A stretch of 64,000 bases of DNA from Felis catus. Lineage: Eukaryota. The translations under genes and the position numbers were made by a program. Where the stretch lies: NCBI RefSeq assembly GCF_018350175.1, contig NC_058379.1, positions 24,242,001 to 24,306,000 of the forward strand, read 5' to 3'. Of the stretch, positions 13,218-58,676 are shown piece by piece. Under the pieces are notes generated by a model. It saw only the letters and a program-made list of their open reading frames with translations. It did not search any database and had not been told where the DNA came from. The first letter of the stretch is position 1. Each line of letters opens with the position of its first letter.

Positions 13218-13418
13218 GGGGTGCCTGGGTGGCTCAGTCGGTCGAGCGTCTGATCAATTGGGTTTTCAAATCTCACAATTTGTGAGTTCGAGCCCCACAT
13301 TGGGCTCTGGGCTGACAGCTCAAAGCCTGGATCCTGCTTCAGATTCTGTGTCTGCCTCCTCTGCCCCTCCCCCACTCATGCTCTGTCTCTCTCTCTCTCT
13401 CAAAAATAAATAAACATA
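13218..13418 (+). mobile_element. CAN-SINE (older host of a nested pair)
   Basis: Outer TSD ATTGTATTTTG at 13207-13217 and 13671-13681. Confidence 0.92.
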
Positions 13419-13627
13419 GGGGCGCCTGGGTGGCTCAGTCGGTTAAGCGTCCGACTTCAGCTCAGGTCACGATCTCGAGGTCCCCGAGTTCAAGCCCCGC
13501 GTCGGGCTCTGGCCTGATGGCTCAGAGCCTGGAGCCTGCTTCCGATTCTGTGTCTCCCTCTCTCTCTGCCCCTCCCCCGTTCATGCTGTGTCTCTCCCTG
13601 TCTCAAAAATAAATAAACGTTAAACAA

Positions 13628-13650
<23 letters not shown>
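13419..13650 (+). mobile_element. Young SINEC_Fc-type SINE inserted in the tail of the previous SINE
   Basis: CpG-rich near-consensus body; AAATAAACATA duplicated on both sides; (TAAA)n tail. Confidence 0.95.
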
Positions 13651-13658
<8 letters not shown>

Positions 13659-15095: not shown

Positions 15096-15546
15096 TACTT
15101 TCCTTTCTCATTCCTCTTTTTTTTTTAAATTAAATGTTGTGTGCATATGCCTTTCTTGATGCAATAGAGATGATAACAAAAATTCCAGCGTGTGCAAAAT
15201 CAATTTAAAATTTTAAATTATGTTGGATGAAATTTCTAATGAGAAAAAGCTTTCCGTGATAATTCAGTTTCCAAACAGGAAAAGATGCTTTTATAAATAA
15301 AAATATCTCCAATTTATTTTTTGAAAATATTTTCCCTTATAGCATGTATATAAATAAAGGCAAGTAGATTATAACGTCTGTGAATCTCCCTTACTTGTAA
15401 AGTTGGGATGATACTAATATGTAACATGGTGTTGTTAAGAAGTTTATTTGAGCACGGTGGCTGGCGTATTGTGCTCAACAGATAATAGCAGTAATTATTA
15501 TTTTGAGATTATGTCAAGATTCTGTTATTTATTTATGTATATTTTA

Positions 15547-15774
15547 TTTTATTTAAAAAAAATTTTTTTTTCAACGTTTATTTATTTTTGGGACAGAGAG
15601 AGACAGAGCATGAACGGGGGAGGGGCAGAGAGAGAGGGAGACACAGAATCGGAAGCAGGCTCCAGGCTCTGAGCCATCAGCCCAGAGCCTGACGCGGGGC
15701 TCGAACTCACGGACCGCGAGATCGTGACCTGGCTGAAGTCGGACGCTTAACCGACTGCGCCACCCAGGCGCCCC
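15547..15774 (-). mobile_element. Very young SINEC_Fc
   Basis: Near-consensus with CpGs intact; perfect 17-bp TSD TATTTATGTATATTTTA at 15530-15546 and 15775-15791. Confidence 0.97.
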
Positions 15775-15791
15775 TATTTATGTATATTTTA

Positions 15792-15936
15792 GAGAGAGAG
15801 AGAGAATGAGCAGGAGAGAGGGGCAGAGGGAGAGAGAGAATCTTAAGCAGGCTCCATGCTCAGCATGGAGCCCAATAGAGGGCTCGATCCCATGACTCTG
15901 GGATCATGACCTGAGCTGAAATCAAGAGTTGGATGC
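15792..15936 (-). mobile_element. Older 5'-truncated CAN-SINE abutting an L1
   Basis: SINE text stops at ...aagagttggatgc and L1 text begins directly. Confidence 0.85.
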
Positions 15937-17451: not shown

Positions 17452-17670
17452 GATTTTTTAAAATGTTTATTTATTTTTGAGAGACAGAGAGACAGAATGC
17501 TAAGAGGGGAAGGGCAGAGGGAGAGGGAGAGGGAGACACAGAATCGAAAGCAGGATCCAGGCTCTGAGCTGTCAGTACAGAGCCCAACGCAGGGCTCATA
17601 CTCACAAACCATGAGATCATGCCCTTAACTGAAGTTAGACGCTCAACCAACTGAGCCACCCAGGCAACCC
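17452..17670 (-). mobile_element. CAN-SINE (SINEC_Fc-related)
   Basis: aatgtttatttatttttgagagacagag...gagccacccaggcaaccc. Confidence 0.92.
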
Positions 17671-17799
17671 ACTGGTGTATAATTCTTAAAATAAAAATCA
17701 TGCTCCAAGTATGCAGTGAGACTGTTGTGTAATAAATTTGATCTTTGTAACTTTTAGAGATGCCTTATTATTTTAAAGCTGTATCACTATAGAGGCATT

Positions 17800-41360: not shown

Positions 41361-41595
41361 GGGTGCCTGGGTGGCTCAGTCGGTTAAGCGTCTGACTTCG
41401 GCTCAGGTTGTGATCTCACAGCTCATGAGTTTGAGCCCCACGTCAGGTTCTGTGCTGACAGCTTAGAGCCTGGAGCCTGCTTTGGCTTCTCTGTCTCCCT
41501 CTCTCTCTGCCCCTCCCCTGCTCACACTCTGTCTCTGTCTCTCTCTCTCTCTTTCAAAAATAAATAAACATTAAAAAAAAGAAAATGAAAAAAAA
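41361..41595 (+). mobile_element. CAN-SINE
   Basis: Perfect 16-bp TSD TAGAATTGGAAACCAG at 41345-41360 and 41596-41611. Confidence 0.95.
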
Positions 41596-42625: not shown

Positions 42626-42677
42626 CATTGCCCTTCCTTTTCCATCTGCTGCATTGCCCTTCCTTTTCCACCTGCTG
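42626..42677 (+). repeat. Tandem duplication, 2 x 26 bp
   Basis: CATTGCCCTTCCTTTTCCA(T/C)CTGCTG twice with one mismatch. Confidence 0.9.
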
Positions 42678-43130
42678 GCCAGAATGTGGTGTATGTGAGG
42701 GGGTTGTTGAGACATCAAGTGTTCGACCTGGCTTCCTGGGCCCCACCTTCCCTCGCTGCTGCCCATATACTGTCTCTACTCAATCTCAAATGATAAAAAT
42801 TTGCCCCTTTCCCAGATGAAGCAGCTTCCTGTGAAATCTGTGATGGTAAGAGAAAAAGTAGTAGCAGGGACCAGTAGGGAAGAAGCAGATGGGCTACAGC
42901 AGATCACATGAGTTTTCTTGAAGCTGTGGGAAATCCTGTGGATCTCAGCACATCTTGACCTTTGCTTTGAAAAAGACTGGCATAGGATCCTGTGGGTGGC
43001 CGCTACATCTCCCAAGACCTGATAATACTGATTTGTTTTAGTCAGGTGGTTCAAATTTTGTCTGGAAGCAGTGGGTTCCCAGTTGCAGACAGTCTTTTAG
43101 GGAACAAGGAGAGAAGTGAATGAAGCATTG

Positions 43131-43458
43131 ATAGGAATTGAATGATATTGAACAATAAAATATTTAAAATATTTATTGGACTCCCCTTATATTCTGTTGG
43201 TCTGTAATTATGTGTTTTTTGTCGTTCTTTTCTCATTAACTAATAATTAGAATAGCTAATTTTATTGTGTACTTACTCTGTGTCAGGCACACCGCGAAAT
43301 TCTTTTTATTCAATCACAGTAACCCACAGTCTATCTTATCATCATCAAGTGAACTCCATAGTAGCATTTCTCTCACAAAAGTATAGAGAACTAATTTTTA
43401 TTCAGCAGCTATTTGTACATCCAATGAATATATGAACATATGTACATGCAATGAATAT
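43131..43458 (+). repeat. Long inverted repeat, left arm
   Basis: Reverse complement of 44246-44584, aligned by eye: about 20 substitutions and 4 small indels in ~330 nt. Confidence 0.97.
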
Positions 43459-44245
43459 CGTATAGAAAAAAGTTGGGGGAGTCCAAATCTATGAGTTTGG
43501 ACTAATTGTGCTATGTCTTGACAGGGATACAACTTTTAAGCTTTTCACTGAGGAAATCTTATAAAGTTGAGTTGGGGATTCTGGAGGGGCATAAGAGAGA
43601 CCTTTAAGTCTTCTCTCTTACATCTCTTTTCGAAACCTTCTAAAGAAAAGAAGCCAGGTTGTGGGCAGTATGGCCAAGTCGTACTTTTTCTCATCTTGTT
43701 TTTGAGTGCCCTAAGAAAACAAAACATGCATACTCTTCTTTTTTGTAACTACTGTGTAAAACTTGAGACCTTAACTTACATTTAACACTGGACTTTGCTT
43801 ACCTACACAGAATAGATAAATGATTTCGTTGTCTGACAGGGAAATCGGTTGTTCTTTCGGTGAAGTAATGAATGATAATGTTTTGTTTTAAATATACAAG
43901 AAGTTATCAGAATTCATCGAGACTACTATAGGATTTTTGTGTGTTTTTCTCCCCCAACTTCACTGAAATAACAGCACTATAAGTTTAAGGTGTACAAAGC
44001 ATGATTTGATTTACATGTATTGTAACTGTAATTGAAATGATTACCATAATAGATTTTTGTTTCTTAAAATATATACCTGAAATCAATAACCACAGAGATT
44101 TTTATCTCTTTCCATAAATAATTATAATTTACAGGTATTTGGCATATATACATGTATATATATTATATAAATAAGTATACTTATTTTAGTTTACATTTTC
44201 TACAAATGCTGCACTAAAGCTAAACTATAGCTGTTTTTATTTGGA

Positions 44246-44584
44246 ATATTCATTGCATGTACATATATTCATATATTCATTGCATGTACAAATAGCTGCT
44301 GAATAAAAATTAGTTCTCTATACTTTTGTGACAGAAATGCCACTATGGAGTTCACTTGCTGATGGTAAGACATAGACTGTGGGTTACTGTGATTGAATAA
44401 AAAGAATTTCACACAGTGTACCTAACACAGAGAAAGTACACAATAAAATTAACTATTCTGATTATGAGTTAATGAGAAAAGAACCACAAAAAGAATACAT
44501 AATTACAGACCAACAGAATGTAAGGGGAGTCCAATAAATATTTTAAATATTTTATTATTCAATATAATATTATTCAATTCCTAT
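44246..44584 (-). repeat. Long inverted repeat, right arm
   Basis: Reverse complement of 43131-43458; spacer 43459-44245 (787 nt). Confidence 0.97.
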
Positions 44585-45206
44585 GTTATATATTGCCTCT
44601 TGGATTCTAGAAATCACCTAAAATGTGACGTGCAAAGTGTAGTGAAAAATATCTATAAACACATTAAAGATTAAAACAGTGGCTGAGTCCATTGAAAGGA
44701 AATGATCTTATGAATTAGTAATGAAAGTGCATTTACAGGTTATTGTCGTACTAGGGTCTGAGTTTTAACAGCTGCTGGTAGTTTAAACTAATAGGACTCT
44801 GAATAGCCCATAATTGAGGATTCATTCTGTTTATGGATTGTTTCTTAATAGAAACACTTAATAGTATTACCTGTCTTAAATTACTTCAAAGAGTAGTTAT
44901 AAAAATGAAATAAGATAAGGTAAGTACCTATGTTTTATAAACATGATAAGTGCGAGAGATCTCAGTGTGTATGTAATATACAAAATTATAAAATTATTAA
45001 GTTTACTGAGTGATAGTTTTAGGAGTTGTTTGAAGCTTCATTTAGATCCCATGAATATAATCAGTGACAATTTCAAAGTGTATTGGACTGAAAGAGTTAA
45101 ATTTGTGTTACAAACATATCATATTAGAAGAGTATTTAAGTTAAATACGAGGCCAGGTATTTTAGAAACAGATGCCATATAGGCCATGAATATATTAATG
45201 TCATTT

Positions 45207-45561
45207 AGAACATGTTTTTAAGTTTATTTATTTTGAGAGAGAAAAAGAGAAAACGCAAGTTGGGGAGGGGCAGAAAAAGAGGGAGAGAAAAAGAATCCCG
45301 AGCAGGCTCCACACTGTCAGCACAGAGCCCGATACGAGGCTTGAACTCACGAACTGTGAGATTGTGACCTGAGCCGAAGTTGGATGCTTAACTGACTGAG
45401 CCACCGAGGTGCCCTAATTTTTTTTTTAATGTTTTTATTAATTTTTGAGTGAGAGCATGAGTAGGGGAGGGGCCAAGAGAGAGGAGGACAGAGGATCTGA
45501 GCAGGCTCTGTGACCTGAGCTGAAATCAGACACTCAACTGACTGAGTCCCCTAGGTGAGCC
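45207..45561 (-). mobile_element. Two tandem CAN-SINEs (one internally deleted) inside one TSD pair
   Basis: TSD ATTAATGTCATTT at 45194-45206 and 45562-45574. Confidence 0.88.
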
Positions 45562-46998: not shown

Positions 46999-47178
46999 NN
47001 NNNNNNNNNNNNNNNNNNNNNNNNNNNNNNNNNNNNNNNNNNNNNNNNNNNNNNNNNNNNNNNNNNNNNNNNNNNNNNNNNNNNNNNNNNNNNNNNNNNN
47101 NNNNNNNNNNNNNNNNNNNNNNNNNNNNNNNNNNNNNNNNNNNNNNNNNNNNNNNNNNNNNNNNNNNNNNNNNNNNNN
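46999..47178 (+). other. TTC28: N-gap predicted to hide TTC28 exon 3 (148 nt, AYFRQGVALQYLGRH...AMKSPMR)
   Basis: No exon-3 sequence found in sequenced DNA. The 180-nt gap is large enough, is preceded by a pyrimidine run (cattatcttttc) and lies ~10 kb upstream of exon 4. Inference only. Confidence 0.5.
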
Positions 47179-49383
47179 GGTCTGACACTAATTTAAAGTA
47201 GGACATTCCTAGCCTTTGAAGACTTTGGACATTGAGAATTGGTAGGTTATTGCTTTGGCCAAGATTGGATATTTTACACAAAGGAAGATCAAGAATCACT
47301 GTCCATGGCTGGTGTTAATGAGGCAGAACAGGATGGTGGTAAGAACACTGGTGCAGAAGCTTACGGACCTGGATTATATTTTCACATTTTTCATAAACTA
47401 ACTTTATGACTAGGGTGAGTGAATTAACTTTTCTGGATTTCAGGGTTATCCAAAGAATACTTTTTAAAAAAATAGTTCTGAGATTCCGTACCTCTAAATC
47501 ACAACACCTCTAGTAGTAAATTGATTTGCTCAGTTGGACCAATATGCCATCTAGAAATAAATGAGAGAAGACATTAGATATTCTAACATTGCGTAAAAGG
47601 AAATAATGGATCTAACTGTAGGCTATGTCTGTTTTTCAGAGGAACATGAAAAAACTATGTTGAATTAAAAGGAAAGAGAAAAGACAGACACTAGTTTACA
47701 TGGTTTTCTCCTGTTGTTACTTCTGTTTTATACCAATTGGTATTCTGGAAAAACAGTGGATTGGAACCAGTATCAAAGGTTGGAGGAGTTCTAAGGCCCC
47801 AAACCGATTGACTTCACTTTGAGAAACATGGATTTTTGCTGAATGAGCTCTTGGACAGATTAGGCTGAAAGGGTACACCAATAGTCATCTTTGCAGTGAT
47901 GGATACACTGAGGCAGATTGGTGGCAAATAGTAGACAGCGAATAATATTCCATATTAGATTATGTCAGGCAGAACTTTGTCTCTGAAATGGTACGTTTCT
48001 GAATGAACCTAAAATTTTTGATGGCAGTGTCATTAGACATCTAGTTTTGAAAATGTTTGTGGCATTATATAGTTTTAATATACTGGCTCATACACTATTT
48101 GGCTCAAAATAAAAGCTAAGTAAAAGTTTGATGAACTAAATGGTACTCCATCTCTGGGCAATTCATAGCTATAAAAAATGTTTTCCTGAAAGTTGAATAT
48201 TTCATGTTTTAGAAAAAAAGTGATAAGGAAATCTCTCCTCATGTGATTTTATAACCCCATACAAAGCTGAGTCTTAGCTTGTAGGAACCTAATGGCTTCT
48301 CCCACTGGGGGACCTGCTGTTAATAAACTCTGACTTAGAACAGATGCGCTTTGGAGCTCCAGGGCTTGGGGCGGGTGGGGGAAGTGGACAACAACAACAA
48401 AAATCAATCTGTCTCTCCTTGCCATTTTCTGGCATTTTCTCATTCTCTCCCTACATCCTTCTGCAAGTAATTTACATGGAATATATATACATTTACATGG
48501 GATATATATGTATATATATATAGTTCTTGAAGATATCACTTCTTTATTCTGAGGTGTTTCTGGGGCTGCCTTAGAATATTGGAGTGAATGTGTTGAGATC
48601 AGCAGAATCATACTTACCATTTTGCCTTTGAAGCAATTTGTTTAGATAAATGTAAGAAAACCTTCCTGCACTTCCAGAAAGAGTTCAGTGCTGCTGTCCT
48701 GTCCCCCTTAGGGTTTTCTGTGCTGCATTTTCTCCTATCTTATACCGAATGACCTAAGGCTGACCCTGGAGAAAGCCGCATCTTACAGGTGCCTGGAGCA
48801 CTTCAGTATTTTCTTCTCTTTCCTTAAGGCGATTTGATTTATCTCATTTATTTTTAGCATTGCCTTTACCCCCGTACCTATTCCAGGTGGGCTTCTCTTA
48901 TCAACATTTTATAGAGGCTGTTCCTTGGCACGGTGTTGTTCTGTGCATCATTTCACATCTTAATGACCTCTCTTTTTGTCATATGGTTGCAATTCACAAA
49001 ATCTGTCATCATTTGCTGCCCATTTTTTACCCACTGTTTATTTTAGCCTCCTGCAGCTTTCTGAGTTCCTGCCATTGTTGTGTATCTGTGCAGTTTGGGT
49101 CACTTTACATATAGGTCTGATCTGTTACATCGTTTTTCTGGTTTTGGTTTTCTTCTTTTACAATTCTTAAATGCAAAAGAGAAAGCTCCCTAGTCCAGGT
49201 GCTTCTATAAGGAAACAAAGCTCTAGTGGTGTGCATAGCATCCCTGTGGTTTGNNNNNNNNNNNNNNNNNNNNNNNNNNNNNNNNNNNNNNNNNNNNNNN
49301 NNNNNNNNNNNNNNNNNNNNNNNNNNNNNNNNNNNNNNNNNNNNNNNNNNNNNNNNNNNNNNNNNNNNNNNNNNNNNNNNNNN

Positions 49384-56999: not shown

Positions 57000-57335
57000 G
57001 TGCTTGTAAGATTTTGAGAGGACAGCAGGACAGAGGAGGGAGAACTGTTCAGGGAAAGTGGCACATCATATTCAAAGAAAGAGTGGAAGAGAAGGTGAGT
57101 GTGGTATATGCATGCGCAGTGGAGAGAAGGAAATTACCGGACTAAGATTGGGGTTACCGAGTCCTATGTATAAGCAGACCCTGAGGGTAGTGCTAGAGTA
57201 AAGGTTGAAGAGTTTGTTCTCGAAATAGCCCATAAAAAGGTATGACAAACAAATAAACAAATGTTTTAAAGCATATTACAAAAGATTGTTTTGTATATCA
57301 TCCTACATTCTCCTTTCCATTTTTTTTTTTCCCAG

Positions 57336-57608
57336 ACTCCCTCGAGCCCACTTATCAGCAGCTTCAGAAAATGAAACTGGACAAGAGCCCCTTTGTGGTC
57401 GTATCTGTGGTTGGGCAGGAACTCCTGACAGCTGGCCATCATGGCGCCTCTGTGGTTGTCTTAGAAGCTGCTCTCAAGATTGGCACCTGCAGCCTCAAAC
57501 TGAGAGGTTCGGTTTTCTCCGCCCTGAGCAGTGCTTACTGGTCTCTTGGAAACACAGAGAAGAGTACTGGATACATGCAGCAGGACTTGGATGTAGCCAA
57601 GACCTTAG
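57336..57608 (+). CDS. TTC28: TTC28 internal coding exon (exon 4 by human numbering), N-terminal TPR region, 273 nt, phase 1-1
   Basis: Acceptor ttctcctttcca(T)11cccag|ACTCC and donor ACCTTAG|gtaggg. Open frame (D)SLEPTYQQLQKMKLDKSPFVVVSVVGQELLTAGHHGASVVVLEAALKIGTCSLKLRGSVFSALSSAYWSLGNTEKSTGYMQQDLDVAKTL(G) recognised as TTC28. Confidence 0.97.
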
Positions 57609-57940
57609 GTAGGGTATGCTTCTGTCTTTTATTTCAGTACAGAAAGGAAATAAAGAAAACTGATTAGCCTGACATGGATAGGGATAGCACATGCAATGAA
57701 AAGTGAGTGCGTCTCTAGAACATTCTGTGTTTTAGAGTGCTTGGGTCTCCAGGGCTTTTCTTCTAACAAGATACCAAGGCTCCCCAAAGGCCAAGATATA
57801 TGGATTAACATATTCATTGCCCTCTTCAGAGATTTGGGCTCACAGATTTAATATTCCAAATGATAGTATTGATGGGTGAATCTTTCATCTTAATTTTAAT
57901 TTTTGCCTCCCTTAGGAGGCGTCACCATTTTGTCAGAGGC

Positions 57941-58160: not shown

Positions 58161-58676
58161 GTAAGTCTGCCATCAGCATACTTGCAAAGAAGCAACACAT
58201 CATAGTAGGTTTGTAGTTAAATCACTGAATCAACAAGCTGATGGTTGTTCAGAACCAGAGGTCATTAGCAGAGCATTGAGCTGACTCCTAACAGCTGGTT
58301 TGTGTCAAGTTCTTTATCCTCTCATTTCTAGGACCCCTACATCCCCGACTGTAGTTGTATGTTATAACTACAGTTACTGTCCAGAGATTCAAGTTCTAGG
58401 ACCATAACTTACTACATAGAGTCTTGGAGAAGAAGAAAGTACTTTTCTAAAAGAAGGGAAGTGAAATCTTAGCTAGTAAATCTGTGGTTCTTAAATTAAT
58501 ATGGGCATTACAAATTATAANNNNNNNNNNNNNNNNNNNNNNNNNNNNNNNNNNNNNNNNNNNNNNNNNNNNNNNNNNNNNNNNNNNNNNNNNNNNNNNN
58601 NNNNNNNNNNNNNNNNNNNNNNNNNNNNNNNNNNNNNNNNNNNNNNNNNNNNNNNNNNNNNNNNNNNNNNNNNNNN

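Follow-up and report, generated by a model that had tools for sequence, protein, structure and literature searches.

A pair of long DNA arms in reverse orientation lies at positions 43131 to 44584 of the window, by which is meant the whole stretch of 64,000 nucleotides of Felis catus DNA that was analysed. The pair probably arose in this lineage as a local inverted duplication of resident intronic DNA, produced by template switching about 13–19 million years (My) ago with the spacer left unturned and followed by neutral decay of both arms. This reading draws on the alignment of the two arms, on the strand skew of the spacer between them, on the abrupt loss of homology at the arm ends and on the pattern of the differences that have accumulated since the copy was made.

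Architecture of the inverted duplication

Arm 1 (43131–43471, + strand) is followed by the spacer (43472–44233, 762 nt, no strand assigned) and then by arm 2 (44234–44584, − strand), which is the reverse complement of arm 1. The homology is solid as far as 43458 and weaker over the last 13 nt of arm 1. The spacer length of 762 nt applies when these weaker 13 inner bases are counted as part of the arms, and the length becomes 787 nt with the arm ends chosen in an earlier, sequence-only reading of this DNA, in agreement with the value given there. A repeat search of the window has found four collinear inverted pairs between 43135–43470 and 44234–44575, with 91–100% complementarity. When arm 1 is compared by gapped blastn with arm 2 in reverse complement, 316 of 351 positions are identical (E = 1e-113), and global alignment of 43131–43471 with the reverse complement of 44234–44584 gives 316 identical columns out of 340 (92.9%). 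The core of the pair, 43131–43458 against 44246–44584, is 94.2% identical. The inverted duplication that the sequence-only reading had placed at these core coordinates is therefore real, and its estimate of about 93% identity fits the full arms, the core alone being somewhat more alike. The longest perfect runs between the arms are 48, 39–43 and 36 nt; the runs of 39 and 36 nt that had been read by eye stand, and the longest, read as 47 nt, is 48 nt.

The arms differ by 15 transitions, 9 transversions and 5 indel events in the global alignment, so that the earlier statement that most differences are transitions holds weakly. K2P is 0.0745 between the full arms and 0.061 in the core. Compared with arm 1, arm 2 has four small extra insertions (5, 2, 2 and 2 nt). 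CpG sites account for four of the arm–arm differences, all of them lost in arm 2: the 3–4 CpG of arm 1 are absent from arm 2, which is without any CpG.

The repeat search also detects an internal tandem duplication with a 27-nt period and two copies at the inner end of arm 1 (43407–43459, + strand), and the repeat search and the alignment together place a matching duplication at the inner end of arm 2 (44246–44294, − strand). Since the same two-copy repeat is present in both arms, it must be older than the inverted copy, as had been proposed. Two further features are found in the spacer. A small local stem-loop with a predicted stem of 8–9 bp is located at 43479–43503, just inside the junction of arm 1 and the spacer, and an AT-rich quasi-palindrome with 70% self-complementarity is located at 44116–44186, about 50 nt from arm 2, and contains an (AT)n run at 44144–44173.

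Host gene and surrounding sequence

The name of the host gene, TTC28, comes from the earlier reading of the sequence alone, and exon-sized blocks of the window are given as N. There are 12 N blocks of 130–196 nt, for example 46999–47178, 49254–49383 and 58521–58676, and not all of them are exons. SINE-like sequence comes directly after the block at 49254–49383, and beyond the block at 58521–58676 there are 25 bases of coding appearance and a GT donor. The N block that begins at 46999, 2415 nt past arm 2, is directly preceded by an acceptor-like pyrimidine tract, which together with the TPR-like stretch described next lends partial support to the gene name. A stop-free stretch of 136 codons at 57257–57664 on the + strand shows a weak match to TPR_7 (E = 0.019, below the Pfam cut-off) and probably represents a coding exon of the host gene that escaped masking. 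Across the window, the + strand shows a T>A skew of 0.080 and a G>C skew of 0.054. An excess of T over A and of G over C typically marks the non-template strand in a long-transcribed mammalian gene. The window-wide skew and the weakly TPR-like stretch at 57257–57664 both fit transcription of the + strand.

Several other repeats and reading frames occur in the surroundings. An outer inverted pair of 112 nt with 79% complementarity (41361–41472 and 45303–45414) brackets the whole unit; its right member translates like a carnivore SINE, and the pair is probably an ordinary inverted SINE pair. A near-perfect tandem duplication of 26 nt in two copies (42626–42677, 96%) is found 450 nt to the left of arm 1. 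The segments 13270–13651, 15543–15834 and 17462–17687 are mutually inverted with 76–89% complementarity and are most likely SINE copies in opposite orientation. In the right flank, an ATG open reading frame (ORF) of 79 codons at 44943–45179 on the + strand has an exact match in a public protein collection (ENA, from a contig of 581 nt). The representative of its cluster is a Logan product of 50 aa, and the ORF is surely host DNA that was wrongly called as a gene. Of ten ORFs looked up, one, in the right flank, is present in the protein collection, on contigs of 581 and 954 nt.

Origin of the second arm

Template switching would account for the arrangement in a single event. The source would have been about 330–340 bp of intronic DNA, made up of unique sequence and of what we take to be an old MIR fragment. 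Most likely, a replication or repair polymerase switched to the opposite strand, copied about 340 nt and switched back, in the manner of FoSTeS/MMBIR-like template switching. The reverse-orientation copy would thereby have landed about 760 bp from its template while the spacer stayed unturned, and both copies would then have decayed neutrally. Inverted copies and hairpins are documented to arise from such switching (PMC5453318, PMC8794818). The stem-loop at 43479–43503 and the quasi-palindrome at 44116–44186 might, speculatively, have stalled a fork or provided the switch site. The junctions show no clear microhomology; a TCCAAAT shared near the inner ends is not significant.

The orientation of the spacer bears directly on the mechanism. 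The (G+T−A−C) skew of the spacer is +0.063, and 762-nt segments elsewhere in the window have a mean skew of 0.069 with a standard deviation of 0.053. The mirrored value of −0.063, which the spacer would show if read in the other direction, is reached by 0 of 63 non-overlapping segments and by 0.05% of overlapping ones. The resulting likelihood ratio for the native orientation ranges from 22 (normal fit) to 57 (kernel density). A skew of this kind could not have been rebuilt by the roughly 3% change that each lineage has undergone since the event. Because the spacer thus keeps the strand skew of the intron, template switching is preferred over an inversion that flipped the spacer, and the template-switch origin suggested by the sequence-only reading remains plausible.

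The main alternative is a micro-inversion by staggered breaks, in which cuts offset by about 340 nt at one end are followed by filling of the overhangs and by rejoining of arm plus spacer backwards. This scheme predicts exactly the layout of arm, spacer and inverted arm. In staggered-break inversion as modelled by Ranz et al., both pieces have their overhang filled in, and the duplications linked to inversions in Drosophila have a median length of 321 bp and often affect one breakpoint only (PMC1885836). However, the spacer skew matches that of the surrounding intron, with the likelihood ratio favouring the native orientation, and the scheme is viable only if the spacer was later flipped back by recombination between the arms. 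A micro-inversion is therefore considered unlikely.

The clues as to which arm was the template and which the copy conflict. The skew and the retention of CpG in arm 1 point weakly to arm 1 being the original (likelihood ratio of about 2), whereas a sharp step-down in GC at 43100, with none at 44584, weakly favours arm 2. We infer the mechanism and the date, and likewise the ancestral state with one arm and a spacer in its present orientation.

Predicted hairpin and its consequences

The predicted fold of RNA from 43125–44590 consists of one long stem with an MFE of −635.6 kcal/mol. When the arms are folded alone, the + strand RNA is predicted to reach −454 kcal/mol and to form 323 pairs, its longest unbroken helix measuring 64 bp, and the − strand RNA is predicted to reach −473 kcal/mol. 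The claim of the sequence-only reading that a transcript of this region contains a long hairpin is in agreement with these predictions, according to which a transcript through the intron would form an imperfect duplex of about 320 bp. Long, near-perfect duplex RNA is edited promiscuously by ADARs in the nucleus, and by analogy the duplex is probably edited there by ADAR and then discarded with the intron. Consistently, A-to-I editing has been linked to nearby copies in reverse orientation (PMC5625713). The best reading of the hairpin is that it is a by-product of the duplication without a selected function.

In published yeast work (PMC10164571), both spacing and divergence reduce the instability of inverted repeats under normal conditions. 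With a spacer of 762 nt and a divergence of 7%, the fragility of the locus is expected to be low, and the fragile site considered in the sequence-only reading finds no support. There is a small chance of a more consequential outcome, namely that the duplex is a heavily edited double-stranded RNA specific to the cat family with a real effect, either by competing with inverted SINEs near downstream exons and so altering splicing or back-splicing or by giving rise to small RNAs, or else that the spacer is still flipping, with both orientations segregating in cats.

Mobile-element interpretation

A non-autonomous DNA transposon would also bring two inverted arms to one place. On this interpretation the 1454-bp unit is a single insertion, the relic of a Tc1/mariner-like element with terminal inverted repeats (TIRs) of about 340 bp and a TA target duplication. 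The unit ends read TA|GGAATTG...CAATTCC|TA, so that a TA target duplication is possible, and the unit is AT-rich, its GC content of 0.30 falling in the lowest 2% of 1454-nt segments of the window. However, the AT-rich tract continues as far as about 45200, 600 nt past the right end of the unit, and its extension well beyond arm 2 shows that AT-richness is not specific to the unit. No other copy of the arms or of the spacer was found in the 64-kb window, even by relaxed blastn; a metagenome scan with a single 32-mer common to both arms gave 0 matches, which says little on copy number.

The ends and the content of the unit also speak against a transposon. No homology extends beyond the arm ends (p = 0.61 on the outer side and 0.35 on the inner side), the similarity stopping abruptly at all four ends. 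No flanking direct repeat longer than 3 nt is found within 6 nt of either end, which rules out intact target duplications of the 8-bp hAT, 9–10-bp Mutator, TTAA piggyBac and L1 types. The longest of the spacer ORFs encodes 72 aa, and a Pfam search of these ORFs returned no credible family, the only match being DUF2788 (E = 0.016, below the cut-off), which is taken as noise; accordingly, no transposase remnant was detected in the spacer by ORF and Pfam analysis. A mid-arm segment at about 43243–43350 resembles what we take to be the 3′ part of a MIR SINE, presumably an old fragment, and the spacer at about 43985–44055 resembles what is presumably an old L1 3′ end; both resemblances serve as leads only. 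If they hold, the arms consist of ordinary resident DNA that includes an ancient, decayed repeat, which argues against a transposon, as does a spacer skew that is the intron's own. Moreover, we know of no DNA transposon activity of this age in carnivores. A transposon relic is therefore improbable. As the sequence-only reading had held, the arms are apparently non-transposon DNA, a view that draws on the indirect tests (a single copy in the window, abrupt ends and the lack of a transposase in the spacer) and on the presumed MIR resemblance.

Age and decay of the arms

The rate of substitution in cats is assumed to be about 2.0–2.3e-9 per site per year. At this assumed rate, K2P values of 0.061–0.075 correspond to a rough date of 13–19 My, the standard error of K being about 0.013. 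The duplication thus probably dates to the radiation of living cats or to a time somewhat earlier.

The differences between the arms look neutral, and no sign of maintenance was found in them. In a simulation of mismatch spacing, the longest identical run of 48 nt compares with a simulated mean of 49.7 (p = 0.49). The random spacing of the mismatches means that there is no conversion-tract signal, and with the arms 6–7.5% apart the gene conversion between arms that the sequence-only reading had considered finds no support. The transition/transversion ratio is 1.7 (15/9), which is ordinary. On the + strand transcript, 6 of the transitions give G·U pairs and 9 give A·C mismatches. Since the G·U changes do not outnumber the A·C changes, pairing does not appear to be spared. 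A search of Rfam gave 0 matches at E ≤ 1, so that no described RNA family points to an hpRNA, miRNA or endo-siRNA locus. A structural RNA element kept by selection thus finds no support.

These observations also bear on the hypothesis of an RNA hairpin kept intact by selection or conversion and acting as an ADAR sponge, as a source of small RNAs or as a modulator of the splicing of a downstream exon. In its favour, the predicted stem is very stable, some expressed inverted duplicates of mammals have been argued to be functional (PMC5398296), and RNA-labelled sequencing runs from two studies hold 22–41% of 178 words sampled from the stretch, a share to which carry-over of DNA may contribute. 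However, pairing-preserving transitions are not more frequent than disruptive ones, 9 transversions and 5 indels have accumulated, the mismatches are randomly spaced, Rfam offers no match at E ≤ 1, and intronic hairpins are removed together with the intron. It is therefore very unlikely that the hairpin is a selected RNA.

Both arms in independent sequencing runs

The same 178 sampled words were searched for in public sequencing runs, 14 of which carry one organism label and 3 a second. Sixteen runs from at least six studies, under two organism labels, contain a share of 0.92–0.96 of the words, and one further run contains 0.70. The arms account for 40% of the stretch sampled, so that the share would be limited to about 0.8 in a genome that had only one of them. 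In addition, arms that are 93% alike and differ at 24 sites and by 5 indels would not result from a foldback artefact, which would give near-identical arms. An assembly artefact, for example from a chimeric foldback read, has no supporting point and is excluded for practical purposes by the words of both arms in these 16 runs and by the differences between the arms. The possibility raised in the sequence-only reading that only a single arm exists was looked at in the run data and is effectively refuted, with these 16 runs at 0.92 or above.

Comparison with known systems

Template-switch mutations described so far (PMC5453318, PMC8794818, PMC10710096) share with the present pair the copying of nearby sequence as its reverse complement, which creates a stem at once, and the local placement of the copy, here apparently without target duplication or mobile element. 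The published events mostly involve tens of bases and short loops, whereas here about 340 nt were copied to a place 762 nt off, and in scale the present copy is nearer to FoSTeS/MMBIR rearrangements than to the described template-switch events. Duplications at inversion breakpoints (PMC1885836) likewise consist of non-repetitive DNA inverted around a middle segment, and the size of the present arms is near their median of 321 bp. Here, however, the middle segment has its native skew, and the piece that would have been inverted is shorter than 1 kb, far below the size of chromosomal inversions.

Intronic pairs of inverted SINEs, which are ADAR substrates (PMC5625713, PMC5080714), resemble the present pair in providing a duplex of about 300 bp within one transcript, on which promiscuous A-to-I editing typically acts. 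They arise from two insertions of a dispersed family, in contrast to what is apparently a duplication at a single locus here, with one copy in the window. The present arms are 93% alike, compared with 74–89% for most inverted SINE pairs in the window. A catalogue of inverted duplicates in vertebrates, defined by arms of 10–10,000 nt and spacers of 0–1000 nt, counts millions per mammalian genome (PMC5398296). The present pair fits this definition and lies at its long, non-repetitive end; the catalogue analysed intergenic duplicates, whereas the present pair is intronic. The duplication is an ordinary neutral rearrangement of a known kind, and nothing suggests a new kind of element or an influence on the gene.

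Its value is modest and lies in being a clean, datable case in which a single mutational event gave rise to a long RNA stem from non-repeat DNA of a mammalian intron. If the duplex is edited, it would offer a convenient way to follow ADAR activity in cats at a single locus. A felid-wide count of such duplications could show how often they originate and how long they persist.
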